A DNA stretch of 63,853 nt, filler included, from Reticulomyxa filosa (Eukaryota; Protista; Foraminifera): the NCBI GenBank assembly GCA_000512085.1. It is 23 parts of 23 records of this genome, joined end to end, with 100 filler letters (N's around TTAATTAATTAA, not from the genome) between each part and the next. Parts side by side here need not be neighbours in the genome. Positions count along the whole stretch, not along the records: positions 28,979 to 31,946 come from ASPP01023858.1; 22 more parts are not named here. One strand, written 5' to 3'. A program made the position numbers and the translations under genes. Below the pieces are notes generated by a model, which worked only from the letters and a program-made list of their open reading frames with translations, was not told where the DNA came from and made no database searches. How positions within the stretch are numbered: position 1 is the stretch's first letter; each line of letters begins with the position of its first letter. Positions 3,120 through 32,279 of this stretch are shown piece by piece.

Positions 3120-3950
3120 ATGGACCGTAATATCAGATTGTTGTGTGTCTGAGATTCACTTCGCATTCAAAGACTTTTTTTTTTTTTTTGGTAGTCAAAA
3201 AATTTTTTTTAAACTTGTATATTGTGTTTCCTTACTTAATTGTTGGGACTGAACCAAACTATTTCTGGCAATTAAAGAAGGGAACCCGATATCTATTTTT
3301 TTTTTCAATCAACAGCTACACTTTCCTTTTTTGTTGTTGTATGAACAACCAATCAAATCAAATACAAACGTGTTGCACATTTTCAATGCTCGCAAGAATA
3401 GTAATTGTGTGGATATCGTTGTTTGATTGCTATTGATTTTTTTCTTTTTTTTTTTTTTTTTTGTAATTGTTTATATTTTTTTTTTTTTTTAGTACGCACC
3501 CTGCTCTTGTATACTATGTACGGAAAACCACAGTTACACCCGAATCTCTTTTTTTTTTTGTTTGCAGTTAAAAAAAAAAATGAATAACTTCGTTTTGTTT
3601 CGATGCAGGTGCCGACTTTCTATCACTTGATTTTTTTAAAAAAAGTTCTAATCTGGGTTAACGGCAATATCTTTGGAGAGCGTAACAGACAAAGAGAAAA
3701 GAATCGGCATACATTTTTGAATTTTTCCCAAGGGTGGGAAGTTTTTCAACAATAAAAACGGACAAAGAGAAAATACAATGCCCACCATAAATGGATAAGC
3801 AAAGAACAAAAAAAAGTCCCCTATTACTACCATGTTTTAACACAGACAAACTCCACAATAAACAGACGATATGTTGTCATTCTTTGGGTAATTATAGCTT
3901 TTCTTTTATCAAAAAAAAAAAAATTAATACACTTGTTTTTATACGTTGTA

Positions 3951-5538: not shown

Positions 5539-5948
5539 CTCTAATCAATTTGGAGGTTTTGGAGATATTTGGAGTTCATTTCCTCAGGGTCCTTAGATCA
5601 ATCGTTACCAATACGAAACATAAAATCGGGCGCAACTTCAGAGGGATCTTATGCATTCCCAACTAATTTTTTGCAAATTATGACCTTGCATGTTGTGCAA
5701 AACCTGGTAACGCAAAAAAGTAGCATACTCTTTTTTTTCCTCAGTAACAGTGTCAACTTTTCAAAGAGTACATTAAACCTAATTTGAAAAATTTAAAACA
5801 GACGAAAGAAAAATAACACGCACTTTGTGTTGACAATAAAAAGCAAGTACAAGAATTTGTAAGTAAAATATATCGTTTTTGAAATTGAAAAAAAAGAATA
5901 GTTGTTTTTTCGAAAGAGGAGGGACTTCATTTCAATTAGAATGTATCA

Positions 5949-6533
5949 ATGGTGGATGCAATAAAAAGTGTATTTTATATAAAAGGTACGTCCTTGTTAG
6001 ATAATACTTGGACATTTCTGCAAACACGGCAAGCCGTGGCCGCAGTAGTAATATTGATAGGGTCAGTTTATCCACTCGTGCTGAAATGGACGAAAGGGTT
6101 GGAAAAATCAAAAACATCAGAAACAGTAGAAATGGACGAGGAGGCAGAGAGCAGTAGCACAGACTCACAAAACTATCCATTTATGATCGGAGTGGCAATA
6201 CTATTGAAGAATATGATAATGTTGGGATATTATTTAATACAATATTACAAATTCCGACGTATGATACCGACCCACAAATATAAATATTATCATCCCATTG
6301 GCAATGATTCGATATTGTCTTTTAGTGACAACGAGACCATACATCACTCTCTACATCGTCATCGATGGTCTCATCGTTTCAAATATGGGGATACAGGGCA
6401 TTACAATCCATATCTTACAAAATCCGATTCAACGCCGACATTGTTCATCCCGGCGGCAATTGTTGCCAAGGGTGTCAATGAAAATTACAATAGCACTATC
6501 GTTTCGAATAATGCTACTATTAATAATAATAAC

Positions 6534-6585
<52 letters not shown>

Positions 6586-8348
6586 GCAATAATAATGAAA
6601 ACAATACCAATAAAGCTCCGGAAAGTGTTCGAACAATCTCTTCTTTGAAAGACCCTTCCATCAATCGTGCGCATGGAGTGTTTAGCACAACTTCGACAGT
6701 GGGATTGAACAACCACCCGTTGGATCACACCAACTTTCGTCTTTCCGATGCGACAAAAGAAAAGTTAATGCATCGCTTATTCATATATACAACATTAATA
6801 TACATATATATATTAATGTTGTATATGTGAATAATATTCGTCGTCTCCCTCTGTCAAAAAAAAATGAAATTTTTTCTAAATTGAACAAATGGCATACATA
6901 GTGACACACCTTTTCCCTCCCTCCCCCCCCCATCCCCTCCTATGATAACAGTACTACAATGAACATTGGAGGTCACTTGCATCAGCGTCATATCAATACT
7001 CACAACAGTCCGCCGGGACATACTACCGTCACAAAAACTGCCCATATTGCTTCACAAACCACTCATGTCCGTGTGTATTATACAAAAAGGAAGAGATATT
7101 ATCCTTTTTTTTTTTTTTAAAAAAAAAATAAATAAAATAATAGTAATAACAAGAAACAAGCGATCGATACACACCTCATTCATTTGAACACGTATATACA
7201 TTTTTAAAAAAAAAAAAAAGAAAAAGGACAAAAGCAGCGCGTATGAATACGACACAATGACGGAGAAGGAGAGTATAAACAATGAAAACGAGAGCAGTGA
7301 TGGGACGTCAATGGACGGATATGAGCGACGACGGGAAGAAGAAGAAGAAGAAGACGACGAGCGCATGCCCGCGAATGCGCAAATGCGCGGAAAGGATAAG
7401 CATAAGAATAAGAATAAGAATAAGAATTGGAATGGAGATGAGAATGAAAACAGTGAGAACAAGGAGGAGGGAGAAGAAGAAGATAATGATGAAGATGATA
7501 ATGATAATGATAATGATAATGATGATGATGATGATGAAGAAGAAGAAGAAGGAGTAGAGAAAATAAAAGAATGGTCGGAATGGTTAAAGTGGTCATTGTA
7601 TTTGGCACCAAATGCAATTCTGGTATTGTTGAATGACATTCTAGCGTTGTATAGCTTGTCGTACGTGACAGTGACGACGTACGCGATATTTATGCAAATG
7701 TCGCTGTTGTTCATTGTGATCGTGAGATATTTTTTCCTGTCAAAGACGTTGTTCAAATCGCAGTTCATGAGTGTGATAATAAGCATAACGGCGATGGCAC
7801 TGTTCAAAACGGTGGAGATGCAAGAGTATAACTACAAACACACAAAGACAACGACGCAGGAGTATGCATGGCATGACTTTATCGGCATCTTTGTGTGCAT
7901 GATTCGAGGCATATTGAAAGCATGTGATTTAGTATACGTAGAGTGGTTCATTCATCATTTGAAGGCGTTGGAGTTTTATGAGAAGCAAGCCATTGTCAGT
8001 ATATGGTTTGTCGTGTGCAGTTTGATGTATATGTTGTTCCATCACTTTGAAGACATTTTCATTTTGCAAAGACCATTGTTGGATGGCTTCACGCTCAGCA
8101 CATATGTGTTTGTGCTTTACGGCGCCTTCTTTTCGGTCATGATCTATCTGCTCATCTTGCAACTCGACGCCCTGGTCATGGGCTTTTGTCAGCAATGCAC
8201 CGTCCTGTTGTCCGTCCTTCTCGACGTCGTCATCTTCAAAACCTATGTCAGCGCCGGCATGTGGCTGTCCGCGTTCATCGTCGTCATGTCCATTTCGCAA
8301 TACTCTTTGATTCAGTTTGAAACTAATGACAAGCAAGTCAATGTCAAT
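5949..8348 (+). CDS. Nucleotide-sugar transporter, SLC35A-like, with a long low-complexity insert (3' end cut by contig end)
   Basis: N-terminal TMs (VAAVVILIGSVYPLVLKWTK; YPFMIGVAILLKNMIML); core SLYLAPNAILVLLNDILALYSLSYVTVTTYAIFMQMSLLFIVIVRYFFLSKTLFKSQFMSV followed by further TMs. Confidence 0.8.
6522..6596 (+). repeat. (AAT)n coding microsatellite (poly-Asn)
   Basis: About 21 consecutive Asn codons in frame in the transporter ORF. Confidence 0.95.
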
Positions 8349-8448
8349 NNNNNNNNNNNNNNNNNNNNNNNNNNNNNNNNNNNNNNNNNNNNTTAATTAA
8401 TTAANNNNNNNNNNNNNNNNNNNNNNNNNNNNNNNNNNNNNNNNNNNN
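8349..8448. other. Artificial contig linker N44-TTAATTAATTAA-N44 (first of 22)
   Basis: Identical 100-bp spacers with stops in all six frames at 8349-8448, 10162-10261, 13461-13560, 14640-14739, 17230-17329, 19308-19407, 20457-20556, 24756-24855, 28879-28978, 31947-32046, 33474-33573, 35473-35572, 37745-37844, 39557-39656, 42986-43085, 49749-49848, 52016-52115, 54206-54305, 55348-55447, 56519-56618, 57619-57718, 58794-58893. Confidence 0.99.
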
Positions 8449-8932
8449 CGTGGAAATCTATGCGTTTTGAAAATGAACTTGTGGAACATTTTTCTTTTTC
8501 CAACAATGAGGATTTGACAGCAAATGATTTTGATTCAACACTGTATTCATAGGAGCCATTTAAATATAACATTTTGCAATCTACTGTACAAGATTGCCAT
8601 TTATGCCGAAAGAATAGCCATAATTTCAAAACTAGATTGCGTGCAGAATATTATACAAAAAAAACTAAATGTGAAGTGATATTATTTGCTTCCTAAAAAC
8701 TAGATCATCAGCACAAGTTAGAAAAAAACTAACTTTTGACAAATCGAGGATCACCATTTGCTTATATTGAAGACTTTTCTTTTTTCAAAAAACGTTCAAA
8801 TGTTTACTTAACAACAAATAAAAAAAATTGGAAAGATCTCAAATTTAAGGCACCCGACATTGTTTTGCACAGGCAAAAATGTGAATTTTTTGCTTAAAAT
8901 TAGCAAAAAGATATTCTGTTGTCCTTGCGGTC

Positions 8933-10120
8933 TCAGCGAGAAGGAATCTTTTGATCAACGTACAAGTGAACGGCCTCTCCCAGACCAAGCTCATTGAAAC
9001 TTTGAACCCAAATATCCCCACACCAACGTGTCAATTTATGAACTAATTCAATTTCAACAAAGTTTTTATCGGCACCAATTTCAGCGATTTTGGGCTCAAA
9101 GTCTCTTTGTATTATTTGAACCACATATCCATGAACTTGATAAGTTTTGAGATCGGAGGGTTCAATTGCTATGCGCAAGACAGGTACTTTTTCCGAAGAG
9201 CGATCGACATGCTTGTTGTTCCTTTCTCTCGTTGCACTACTATCGTCTGCATATTTTTTTTCGTCTTTGACAATCTCAGGAGAGTCCTCTCTTTCTATCA
9301 TCTTTTTCACAATATTTACAGTCACTTTTGGTTTCACCGCGAGTTTGCCTGAAACGGAGCCAATCATTTCTTGTCGTATTGGTGCCGAGTTGTAACTTTT
9401 TTTTTCCCCCCCCCCCCACGTCCCAATGTGTCCACAGCATGTATATACATACATTTGTATATGTATACAAATAATGCAAGGAAATGAAAAAACTCTAAGG
9501 AAATTTTTTTCAAAGGAATGGCATATTTGCTATGGCAATACTGCAAACAATCCTGATAAAACTGCTTTGCTTTTTCTACTGTAACGGCTTTCTCCGTATC
9601 GGATGTGGCATTCCAGTGCTGAGTTTCGAAAGTATTTTCCCATTGGATGGCTCTATCCAACCACTTTTGGTTCTCCTTCAATGCCACTTGCAACACTTGG
9701 CGTTGAATACTCTTTTGCTGTTGCACTTCGCTCAGTAATTGATTAAAGGCTTGCTGTACTGCCTTCTGGTTCTCCGCAATCTTTGCACATACCTTTGTTA
9801 CTTTGTCCTCCATTTCTTGCTCCATTTCTTTCAGTCTTTTTTGCTGCTTCTCGATTTGCGTCTTTGCTTCGGCTCCAATTTGCTTTTGCAATTCCTCAAT
9901 GTCCGACTGCGTTTTGCTCTTTTCTTTTTTTATTTTCGATTTGGAGTCGTGATCTTCATTTGCATCCATATTTGTCTTGCACATCAATTTTGACTTTGGC
10001 TTGTCCTTTGTCTTGGGCTTTGCTCTTTGATCCGGGTTTGCCTTTGCTTTCGTTTTTGTTCTCGCTTTTGTTTTTATCTCAGACTCTCTTGCTTCGACCT
10101 CCAATTTTGACGGCTGCTCT
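8933..10120 (-). CDS. Hypothetical Lys-rich/coiled-coil protein, last two exons
   Basis: ORFs 9364-10104 and 8933-9454 separated by an intron-like (TA)/poly-C tract; heptad-like IEELQKQIGAEAKTQIEKQQKRLKEMEQEMEDK. Confidence 0.55.
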
Positions 10121-28878: not shown

Positions 28879-29077
28879 NNNNNNNNNNNNNNNNNNNNNN
28901 NNNNNNNNNNNNNNNNNNNNNNTTAATTAATTAANNNNNNNNNNNNNNNNNNNNNNNNNNNNNNNNNNNNNNNNNNNNTATATATAATATATATATATTA
29001 TAATATTATATATATTATATATAATATATATAACATATATTATATATATATATACATATATATAAACAGACACAAAA

Positions 29078-29489
29078 CTTGGGTGTATTTGTACTCCAAT
29101 GCCTTCTTTTCTTTTGATAACTCTGTGAGTTGATCTTGAATGACACCATTTGTAACGCCCAAAGTGTCGACTTGCTTTTGCAACTCGTCTATTTTTTGTT
29201 GGTATTTCAAGATCGCATCTTTCATGGTGTTGCGCAGATTTGCAAACAACACCTTCATCCCCTCGGTCGACTCGTCCACTGCTGCATCTGACTTGCTTCT
29301 GCACCATACATTCACCCCCGTTATCATCAACACAAACACTAACAGCTGTATCACCACTGTCAATCCCCATCCCCACCGTCCCGCCTTCCTACAGGGCACT
29401 TGGCACCACAGGCACGAATGATAACACGACGACAACCAGGTCAACCAACTCCCAGCCTCTCTCTTAGGTCGAGTGCGAATGTAATACAT
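29078..29489 (-). CDS. Hypothetical coiled-coil protein fragment
   Basis: SKSDAAVDESTEGMKVLFANLRNTMKDAILKYQQKIDELQKQVDTLGVTNGVIQDQLTELSKEKKALEYKYTQ, then GT donor and (TA)n intron. Confidence 0.45.
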
Positions 29490-30093
29490 TACCTAAGCTT
29501 AGAGGGCGTCTGATGATCTTTTTTCAAGGGGCACAATTTTTTATCAAATTTTTCGTTCTTTTGTTTTTAAAAACACTGCTGGCAGTGAAATGACATATTC
29601 AAACATTGATATTAAAATTACTATCAGAAACCAAAGCAACTAAATTAGTTCAACTCAACATACATTCAAACTCTTCTTTCTTTTCATTCTCCTTCAATGG
29701 CGCTTTTCTTTCTTTTTGAATTGGATTGATGTCTATCCACCTAATTCAATGTTGAAAAATTACATTCTTTTAACTGAGTTAAATCATAAATTGCATGACA
29801 TTTTTTGTCTAAAAGCAAAGGAAATCCTGAAAGAATTAAAACCTATGTTATAAATGATCTCTTTTTTTAGTTGAAGATAATATGATCATTTTTCCAACTT
29901 TTTTCTAATAATACTCAATAAAATAATCATGGCCTAAATGTCCAATATTCAATCCATTACATTTGATCGAGAATATTGCATACTTTTATTTGTTTGAAAT
30001 TTGTAGAGCAAATGAAATGCACCATTTCATTCATTAACACAGCATTTAGTGTATACAAAAAAGAACTGCAAATTAAATGTACTTTTTTGAAGG

Positions 30094-30171
30094 GTTTTTT
30101 AAAGACCCTTGATTAGTCCAAGAAAAAAAAGCTGAAATAGTTTTTCATCCGAGATACTGTCAAAAGAAAAA
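30094..30171 (+). promoter_or_regulatory. Conserved upstream element of WD40 subfamily A
   Basis: GTTTTTT-N5-CCCTTGATT-N24/25-AGTTTTTCATC-NN-AGAT...TCAAAAGAAAAA also present upstream of the paralog on the minus strand at ~18987-19076. Confidence 0.55.
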
Positions 30172-30183
30172 GGAAAGAAAAGA

Positions 30184-31487
30184 ATGTTCTTGACTCTTTT
30201 TAGAATGAAACAAACTTCGACTCAATCATTGGTAAGTTTCAGTTCCAATTTTTTTTTTTAGGGTAAACTTTTTTGTGTCTAAATCAGTCAGAGGAAGAAA
30301 AATTTGAAATGGTTATTGAGAATTGGATTAGAATATCGAATATTAAATTAGGATGGATTCATGACTTTAATAAGCTTGTTGTAAATTATGTTAAGTTTTT
30401 GTGATATAATTATAATTATAATTATTATAATACATATTTTTAATATATAAAAAAGGCAACAACATTCTTCATGGTCGATTCATTTTGTTTAAAGGCAAAA
30501 TTACTTAAAACATTGAATGGACATACCAATAAAGTATATAGTATTGATTATTATAATAACTTAATTTGTTCTGGATCAAATGATAAAACAGTTCGTGTAT
30601 GGGATTTAGAAAAAAATGAAGAAATAAAAAGATCTACTCAGCATGCAGAATATATAACTTGTGTAAAATTTTCATTATATGATTATAATAATAATAAACG
30701 TAATGTTATTTGTTCTTGTTCAGATGAAATTATTCGTTTTTGGGATTTTAAAAATAATGAACAATTTAGAACATTAAATGAACATACAGGTGCTGTTTGT
30801 GCGATTGACTTATCATCATTTAATAATGGCAAATATTTATGCTCTGGATCTGGTGATCGTACAATTCGTTTATGGAATATTGAAACATCAAAATCATTAC
30901 ATATTTTTAATGGACATAATGGTGTTGTTTGGTGTATAGATTTTTCACCATTACAAAGTAATACAGATAATAATAATGTTGGTATTATTGGTGGTAATGG
31001 ATATACTATTTGTTCTGGATCATTTGATAAAACTATTCGTATATGGGATATTGAAACAACTAAAAAATTAATTACATTTAAAGGACATCAATGTTGGGTT
31101 AGAAGTGTCAAATATGGAATTAATGAATTAAGGAATACAATATTATCTGGATCAAATGATAATACTATTCGTTTATGGGATATTAGATCTGGTAAACAAA
31201 TCCAAATATTTAATGAACATAAAGACGCAGTTATGATTGCTAAATATTCACCATTTATAATTAACAACGATGACAACAATGTTAATAATGTCTCAAATAT
31301 ATTATGTTCTGGATCATTAGATAATACAATTCGTTTTTGGGATATTCGATCAAATAAAGAAGAATTATATACTATTAAAGATTGTGATGGAATATATTGT
31401 CTTAAATTTTTACAATTTAAATATAAAAATTATGGTGTTCATTTATGTTATGGTACTTTGAAAGGATTTATTCGTATTTGGGGATGA
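30184..31487 (+). CDS. Expanded-family WD40 protein (subfamily A), intact, 3 exons
   Basis: Exon 1 (ATG 30184 or 30205)...QSL|; module exon 30288-30389 SEEEKFEMVIENWIRISNIKLGWIHDFNKLVVNY; exon 3 30456-31487 with WD repeats ending HLCYGTLKGFIRIWG*. Confidence 0.92.
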
Positions 31488-32279
31488 AAATACGGAAAAT
31501 ATTGAGAATATAGAAAATATGTTAATATGCCAATAGGATTTTCAATTGAAAACTTGTAGTATTACTTTTTTTATTGAAAGCCAAATTCTTTTTTCAGAAC
31601 ATAAAAATGTAATATTGATTTTTTTATTAATTTGTCATAATCGATAATGAGTAATATCAAAGAAACAAATATAAAGCAAAGTTATTACAGAAATTTTATA
31701 TTTAAAAATTACAATTTGGTTAAATCGCTTTTTGTCTTGTGTCTCTTTGTCAATTTTTTCAAATTCTAATTCAAATTGTTTCTAAAGTTCTTCTTTTGAT
31801 CTGAATGGTCCATTTTTGAATATTTTTGTTTTTATATTCATGACTTACATGGAAATTTTTTTTGCAACTTTGAGCGAACTCCAGTCCTAAGCAACAGTTC
31901 AACAGCACGCCTTTTGTTAAAATTATAAATCATTTAGCAATTTTTTNNNNNNNNNNNNNNNNNNNNNNNNNNNNNNNNNNNNNNNNNNNNTTAATTAATT
32001 AANNNNNNNNNNNNNNNNNNNNNNNNNNNNNNNNNNNNNNNNNNNNAAATAATTAAAAAAAATGACAATGTGAAAAAGGAAAAAAAAAAAATAACAATTG
32101 GAAAAAAGAAAAAATGAAAAAAAGAAAAAAAAGATAAAGAGAAAAAGAAAAAAAATATAAAAAAGAATGCAAAAATTTGAAAAAAATGAAAAAGAAAAAA
32201 AGAACGATGGCGCCGACGAATGAAGCTAAGCGGTGTGGAAATTGGCACGAAGTGAAAATCTAGGAGAATGATCGATCAA

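Follow-up and report, generated by a model that had tools for sequence, protein, structure and literature searches.

What is the 34-residue segment encoded by the second exon of a WD40 gene of Reticulomyxa filosa, and what could it contribute to the propeller that follows it? Reticulomyxa filosa is a naked, amoeboid freshwater foraminiferan. The gene lies in a window of 63,853 nucleotides, made up of 23 parts from 23 records of the draft genome that were joined end to end with 100 filler letters between each part and the next. The piece in question, 2968 bases at window positions 28979-31946, is contig ASPP01023858.1. It has a single annotated gene, on the plus strand at window positions 30205-31487 (contig 1227-2509), whose product P0001 (386 amino acids) was deposited as a 'WD-40 repeat-containing protein' and matches the translated window sequence at 100% identity. 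Positions 30288-30389 translate as SEEEKFEMVIENWIRISNIKLGWIHDFNKLVVNY, referred to here as the box. The initial annotation had proposed that the box is a portable module on an exon of its own, fused to two different WD40 scaffolds and serving as a ubiquitin-ligase adaptor. The present analysis favours another role for it. Exon 2 would encode a lineage-specific amphipathic box, consisting of a helix, an extended NIKLGWI segment and a second helix, and three expanded propeller families of R. filosa would use this box as their constant docking handle.

The box has no counterpart in the collections that were searched. Pfam-A returned no family for the box of the window gene alone, and 69 boxes searched at E <= 10 matched no F-box, F-box-like, SOCS-box, VHL, U-box or LisH model. 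Their sole match, to one BTB-like family, was at chance level (E = 0.093). A search of the PDB sequences with the box profile gave chance matches only (best E 0.17). The ESM Atlas yielded no usable match by features and generic helical matches by structure (TM 0.52-0.65), and Foldseek found no match to the isolated N-terminal model, which as a query was one single helix. Comparison of the full-length model with PDB structures (VIA-align) retrieved WD40 propellers only (Z 39-40). The solved propellers align only from model residues 33-57 onward, and none of the alignments includes helix 1 of the box. No paper on the box motif, nor on a WD40 or Kelch expansion in R. filosa, was found in the literature. 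By these comparisons the box is an undescribed unit, and neither Pfam nor the PDB sequences contain a detectable relative. The initial annotation had taken it for a real, uncharacterised unit bounded by its own exon, and this is upheld. In the domain catalogues the box would count as a new family.

The consensus of the 69 boxes is SEEEEIQIIIQ[HY]WIRILNIKLGWI[NH]DFDKLVVNY. In these sequences W23 is invariant, and conservation reaches 90% or more at I9, W13, R15, I19, G22, I24, F27 and Y34. The box is present in 75 of the 120 closest WD40 paralogues of P0001, all of which come from R. filosa and are about 50-65% identical; several of the paralogues without it are faulty gene models and not true exceptions. 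A scan with a box profile, as recommended in the initial annotation, was carried out on 1.84 billion cluster representatives using all 34 columns. It identified 188 clusters at E <= 1e-3, 87 of them at E <= 1e-10, and the partner domains are two types of WD40 propeller and Kelch propellers. All box matches having a source name belong to R. filosa. These comprise the set of 120 paralogues, a further set of 30 proteins and nine of ten matches sampled from the bottom of the 150 listed, the tenth being a repeat protein from ENA without source name. As far as the databases show, the box seems to be confined to R. filosa, where the WD40 and Kelch propeller proteins bearing it number in the hundreds.

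The constraint on the box acts on the protein. Pairwise differences among 15 genomic copies of the box are 0.315, 0.118 and 0.321 at codon positions 1, 2 and 3, respectively. Conservation at the DNA level was rejected as an explanation because position 2 is much more conserved than positions 1 and 3. The codon for Arg15 is CGA in 13 of these 15 copies, which were taken from the window and from loci L001-L008; AGA, not CGA, is expected for arginine in a genome so rich in AT.

The architectures in which the box occurs were surveyed in 302 fetched proteins, a biased sample. The box precedes a WD40 propeller of type A (the IGGNGYTICSGS type, which is the class of the window gene) in 146 proteins and one of type B (the FS-x-DG type) in 28, confirming that it is found on two unlike WD40 scaffolds; the confirmation rests on these relatives, as the three other copies noted in the window lie beyond the contig analysed. 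Its portability exceeds what had been claimed. In 25 proteins a Kelch propeller comes first and the box forms the last 34 residues, followed by 1-5 residues and the stop codon. The tail has the pattern ...KTKVRVWDxSQL/SKNEIKxIIxYWIRTLKIKLGWIDDFDKIIMKY, in which the slash stands before the box, and at least 18 deposited 'Kelch motif family protein' entries end in the box in this manner (...KY plus 1-5 residues). In another eight proteins, known as gene models, a Kelch propeller and a charged linker are followed by one box and then by a WD40 propeller of type B. The proteins ending in the box are not truncated models of this longer form. That explanation was rejected on the evidence of L003 and L006, where no WD40 reading frame lies downstream; at L003 a further Kelch gene comes next in that direction.

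The box is a separate exon at all genomic loci examined. The exon had been described as exactly 102 nt long with phase-0 introns on both sides. This is correct for the copy at 30288-30389, but the WD40-type genomic copies with a phase-0 AG acceptor have exons of 96-111 nt, usually 99-105 nt, and the description is typical rather than universal. All eight WD40-type genomic copies have a GT donor right after the Tyr codon, and most of them have a phase-0 AG acceptor. At L002 and L003 the last exon encodes the Kelch-type box and is preceded by a phase-0 intron of 77-80 nt. At L004, where the box lies between a Kelch propeller and a WD40 propeller of type B, its exon is 105 nt long and both flanking introns are phase 0. 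Kelch-type and WD40-type box exons begin at the same Ser or Thr, behind a phase-0 acceptor.

Residues specific to the architecture class occur in the box sequences, and a tree of 190 distinct boxes, weak in that it is built on 34 columns only, required 18 changes of class label compared with 51-59 in the ten runs listed with shuffled labels. Since the box tracks the scaffold class on the tree, the sequences point to a small number of old fusions, after which each family expanded, and not to ongoing shuffling. Kelch-box and box-WD40 genes are interspersed and in places directly adjacent (L003, L005); at L005 about 300 bp separate a Kelch-type box from a WD40-type box downstream of it. In four of five typical copies of the Kelch-type tail, the final Tyr or Phe codon is followed by A/GTA[AG]A (L002 1030-1044; L003 4268-4282 and 6565-6579; L006 6461-6472). 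This resembles a splice donor shifted by one base, and the Kelch-only genes may therefore be derived from Kelch-box-WD40 genes through lost splicing.

Some paralogues (P0298-P0302 and P0006) have the same WD40 cassette and lack the box. The cassette begins with F-x-F-D-x-F-x-SSSKLL, at the start of exon 3, and the point at which the box and the alternative N-terminus are exchanged is the boundary between exons 2 and 3. The N-terminus of these paralogues contains a TRAF-type zinc finger (Pfam E values 5e-6 to 2e-3 in P0298-P0302), although only P0299, at 27.6 bits, reaches the 27-bit Pfam cut-off for zf-TRAF. It also contains a region rich in Cys and His that by eye resembles a RING, in which Pfam detects no RING, and about 120 residues of apparent coiled coil, again recognized by eye. 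A coiled coil is taken here to be an oligomerising element.

The AlphaFold2 model of full-length P0001 has a mean pLDDT of 88.7; most of the propeller is at 90 or above and the N-terminal part is at 70-80. In this model the box is a hairpin, with a non-helical segment, residues 26-35 (SNIKLGWIHD), between its two helices. When the N-terminus was folded alone, using 85 aligned sequences, residues 11-57 became one long helix with pLDDT above 90. The hydrophobicity of the alignment columns has a helix-like periodicity of 100 degrees in residues 13-27, an extended-like periodicity of 140-180 degrees in residues 26-36 and a weak peak at 85 degrees in residues 35-56, a pattern that favours the hairpin over the single helix. 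The hydrophobic moment of helix 1 is approximately 0.55-0.6. We read a change of conformation with context, as it appears in these models, as typical of segments that need a partner.

A short, strongly amphipathic element rich in Trp and Ile might also be a targeting signal that directs the propellers to microtubules, membranes or organelles of the streaming syncytium. Such a signal would suit R. filosa, whose giant reticulose cell has fast transport on microtubules (PMC13371060). However, there is no known targeting-domain model among the Pfam matches, and the pattern of conservation is that of a specific folded interface and not of a loose amphipathic helix. A targeting role is regarded as very improbable.

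Helix 2 is continuous with the linker helix of the WD40 cassette, and helices in front of propellers are common: the alignments of PRPF4, LIS1 and G-beta-5 begin at model residues 33-49 (44-49 in LIS1). The box might thus be an intramolecular element, either an ancestral hinge between two propellers or a regulatory cap or latch on the propeller, retained for folding or autoinhibition. The single box between Kelch and WD40 in the eight gene models would be such a hinge, and the decayed-donor look of the Kelch tails suggests that the Kelch-only genes are truncations. On the other hand, the box is found in both orientations and combined with two unrelated propeller folds, its pLDDT is below that of the propeller, and the TRAF-type paralogues carry the same cassette without it. 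Moreover, a leftover hinge should decay, whereas the box is kept as the last 34 residues of the Kelch-only proteins, of which it is the most conserved part. An intramolecular role is accordingly given a low probability.

The propeller that accompanies the box is well defined. Exon 3 matches Pfam WD40 in six stretches (E = 1.2e-47). In the alignment of the 120 paralogues the scaffold is near-invariant, with a mean column entropy of 1.08 bits, and 26 columns are hypervariable, with at least 2.8 bits each. Through blade 6 these columns are situated at GH-x-[x][x]-V-[x] and SGS-[x]-D, apart from two strays (77 and 269); the last blade has its variable columns at other positions. In the AlphaFold2 model, the regular hypervariable positions fall on the D-A loops, at the beginning of strand A and on the B-C turns. 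The D-A loops and B-C turns of WD40 propellers form their top face, which is the usual ligand site, and the hypervariable loops of this cassette are presumably part of that face. The distribution of the variable columns suggests that the WD40 propellers are a recognition repertoire with a diversifying binding surface. The large repertoire of propellers spoken of in the initial annotation fits the observed variation on a near-invariant scaffold.

A constant short box joined to variable propellers is the design of substrate receptors, shared by F-box/WD40, F-box/Kelch and SOCS-box/WD40 proteins, and it was by this analogy that the box had been proposed as an adaptor for a cullin-RING or other E3 ligase. 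The box would then bind Skp1, Elongin C, DDB1 or a lineage-specific adaptor. The concentration of the propeller variation in 26 columns, mostly those of the GH-x-x-V-x and SGS-x-D loops, speaks for such a receptor, and the RING-like region and TRAF zinc finger of the box-less paralogues tie the cassette to ubiquitin-type signalling, which is a small gain. However, the Pfam and PDB searches described above connect the box with no ligase box, and Pfam detects no RING in the TRAF-type paralogues. In addition, the box occurs at either end of a propeller, C-terminal in at least 18 Kelch proteins and internal in eight models, while to our knowledge F-boxes sit N-terminal and SOCS boxes C-terminal. 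The hallmarks of an F-box are an LPxE start, a three-helix pattern and binding to Skp1. The likeness of the GWI-x-DF motif to LP-x-E-I, on which the earlier proposal drew, is a resemblance without statistical support. A ligase receptor box is for these reasons an improbable identity for this element.

The explanation favoured here is that the box is an autonomous docking box, and the chance that this is so is judged to be about even. We infer that it mediates protein-protein contact. It is regarded as an independent unit because it is bounded by its own exon, occurs in either orientation and on two unrelated propeller folds, and is exchangeable with a zinc-finger and coiled-coil N-terminus; the same exon-bounded, portable and exchangeable behaviour makes it unlike a structural part of a single propeller. 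It resembles a docking element because it is amphipathic and rich in Trp and Ile, because its predicted fold depends on context and because it occupies the position of the coiled coil of the paralogues. The propellers would contribute variable recognition surfaces, and the box would couple them to each other, box to box, or to one common partner.

Of these two forms of coupling, self-association is tentatively placed first, at a probability clearly below even, and a shared external partner ranks after it. The preference arises because the Kelch-box and box-WD40 proteins are apparent halves of the Kelch-box-WD40 proteins, each half having a box, and because their genes are interspersed or adjacent. 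Pairing of Kelch-box with box-WD40 proteins through the box would rebuild a two-propeller receptor in many combinations, resulting in a combinatorial intracellular recognition repertoire. This further step is doubtful. In this giant, syncytial protist such a repertoire would possibly serve to sense pathogens or to tell self from non-self and, if it exists, would be built on an adaptor without relative in other organisms.

The same arrangement, with the motif C-terminal in Kelch proteins, N-terminal in WD40 proteins and the genes sometimes adjacent, is reminiscent of the signalling-motif pairs of fungal NLR systems, in which activation is passed on by templated assembly. P0217 (L008), a fragment of 306 amino acids, has a weak NACHT-like region immediately upstream of its box, below the Pfam cut-off (E = 0.005; 17 bits against 26.7). 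The contig of L008 ends right behind the box, so that any WD40 part following it would lie outside the contig. However, the box is predicted to be helical, not a beta-arch, and it is not rich in Gly, Asn or Gln. Typical members of the family are without a nucleotide-binding oligomerisation domain, the NACHT match being found in the one fragment only. A templated-assembly pair is the most improbable of the explanations considered.

Several observations weigh against a docking box that joins the propeller families. The TRAF-type paralogues are without the box, so that box-to-box pairing cannot join the two classes. The two AlphaFold2 models disagree: the full-length protein has a hairpin where the isolated N-terminus forms one long helix. 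In the WD40 family the scaffold, with a mean column entropy of 1.08 bits, is better conserved than the box, with 1.67 bits, and the proposition that the box is more conserved than the propeller is therefore false for this family. It is true only for the Kelch family, in which the box has 0.69 bits and the body 1.01 bits. Finally, the family is carried by one genome only, a fragmented draft with many faulty gene models, and some of the box architectures could be annotation fusions.

The box family has in fact brought many faulty gene models of the R. filosa annotation to light (P0003, P0043, P0109 and many of P0001-P0120). Many of the box-carrying models read through intron 2 ('NYV...'); some models of the family start at a Met within exon 3, and some fuse neighbouring genes, as in P0121, which has two boxes. 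Models starting with 'MILTNLLSIM' appear to be the +1 frame of HDFDKLVVNY. Locus L001, at which four WD40 paralogues stand in a tandem array, has irregularities of its own (3647-3748, 5857-5956 and 8036-9550), namely an orphan Kelch-type box exon without a Kelch body upstream, a box split by a frameshift, either as a pseudogene or through a sequencing error, and a copy whose N-terminus, of 139 residues, is unrelated.

The features of the window gene are listed in the table. Its three-exon splicing is based on the deposited model together with the splice signals. A second in-frame ATG is present upstream of the deposited start, at 30184.

Table. Features of the P0001 gene and of the box within it (window coordinates; a slash marks a splice junction).
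Feature	Position	Strand	P0001 residues	Basis or remark
Exon 1 (MKQTSTQSL)	30205..30231	+		Start codon per deposited model; 3' end TCA TTG/gtaagt
Intron 1, 56 nt, phase 0	30232..30287	+		gtaagt...atcag; junction QSL/SEEE found in P0001
Exon 2, 34-residue box, 102 nt	30288..30389	+	10-43	aatcag/ before, /gttaag after
Helix 1 of box, amphipathic, predicted	30291..30335	+	11-25	AlphaFold2; 100-degree periodicity
Connecting segment SNIKLGWIHD	30336..30365	+	26-35	Best-conserved part of box (column conservation)
Start of predicted helix 2 (FNKLVVNY)	30366..30389	+	36-56 (whole helix)	Helix runs on into exon 3, to residue 56 (30494)
Intron 2, 66 nt, phase 0	30390..30455	+		gttaag...aaaaag, with in-frame stop codons inside; junction VVNY/ATTFF in P0001
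Exon 3, WD40 cassette: linker helix, seven-bladed propeller, stop codon	30456..31487	+		Pfam WD40, AlphaFold2, PDB matches

Further features lie elsewhere on the contig. An interrupted (TA)n simple repeat occupies positions 28979-29060, at the start of the contig, and may be the cause of the assembly break there. A GC island extends over 29079-29480, with a GC content of 42-53% compared with 20-30% in the rest of the contig. It houses an unannotated open reading frame of 149 amino acids on the minus strand (29040-29489), which runs into the (TA)n repeat and has a stretch resembling a membrane span and a tail resembling a coiled coil. Searches of this region gave nothing above noise in Pfam, nothing significant in Rfam and no tRNA.

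Identification of the partner of the box would reveal the purpose of a very large investment in genes. The candidate purposes include the turnover of proteins, the recognition of self and non-self in a syncytium that fuses, and selection of cargo on the transport network.

Each of the known systems resembles the R. filosa proteins in some respects and differs from them in others. The F-box receptors also have a short helical box, of 35-50 residues, together with a variable propeller, and have undergone big lineage-specific expansions; the R. filosa box, however, matches no F-box model and is found C-terminal and between two propellers as well. The SOCS-box proteins, such as WSB1, in which WD40 repeats are followed by a C-terminal SOCS box, are similar in that a short box ends a repeat domain, as the Kelch-type copies do. 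Unlike them, the R. filosa box lacks BC-box and Cul-box motifs as well as a Pfam match, and most of its copies are N-terminal. The LisH motif, which forms a four-helix-bundle dimer, stands before the WD40 propellers of LIS1 and TBL1 and is similar in length (about 33 residues), in having two helices directly upstream of the propeller and in its hydrophobic and aromatic core. Here the differences are the lack of a match to the LisH model and the spacing of the conserved Trp and Gly residues.

The WD40 repertoires of the fungal HET-E/NWD proteins have a near-invariant scaffold with variation in the loops after GH and before the Asp of SGS-x-D, as seen here. In contrast to them, typical R. filosa members are without NACHT, and each of their blades is conserved from one paralogue to the next but unlike the other blades of the propeller. 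TRAF7-like proteins, with a RING, a TRAF zinc finger, a coiled coil and seven WD40 repeats, have a layout resembled by that of P0298-P0302, in which the RING and the coiled coil are recognized by eye. The window gene differs in having the 34-residue box in place of the zinc finger and coiled coil, preceded by a leader of nine residues only. The box itself is undescribed and without detectable relative, but a constant box with variable propellers is a known design: in the F-box, SOCS-box and NLR systems, short constant boxes on variable repeat domains wire recognition repertoires to a common output.
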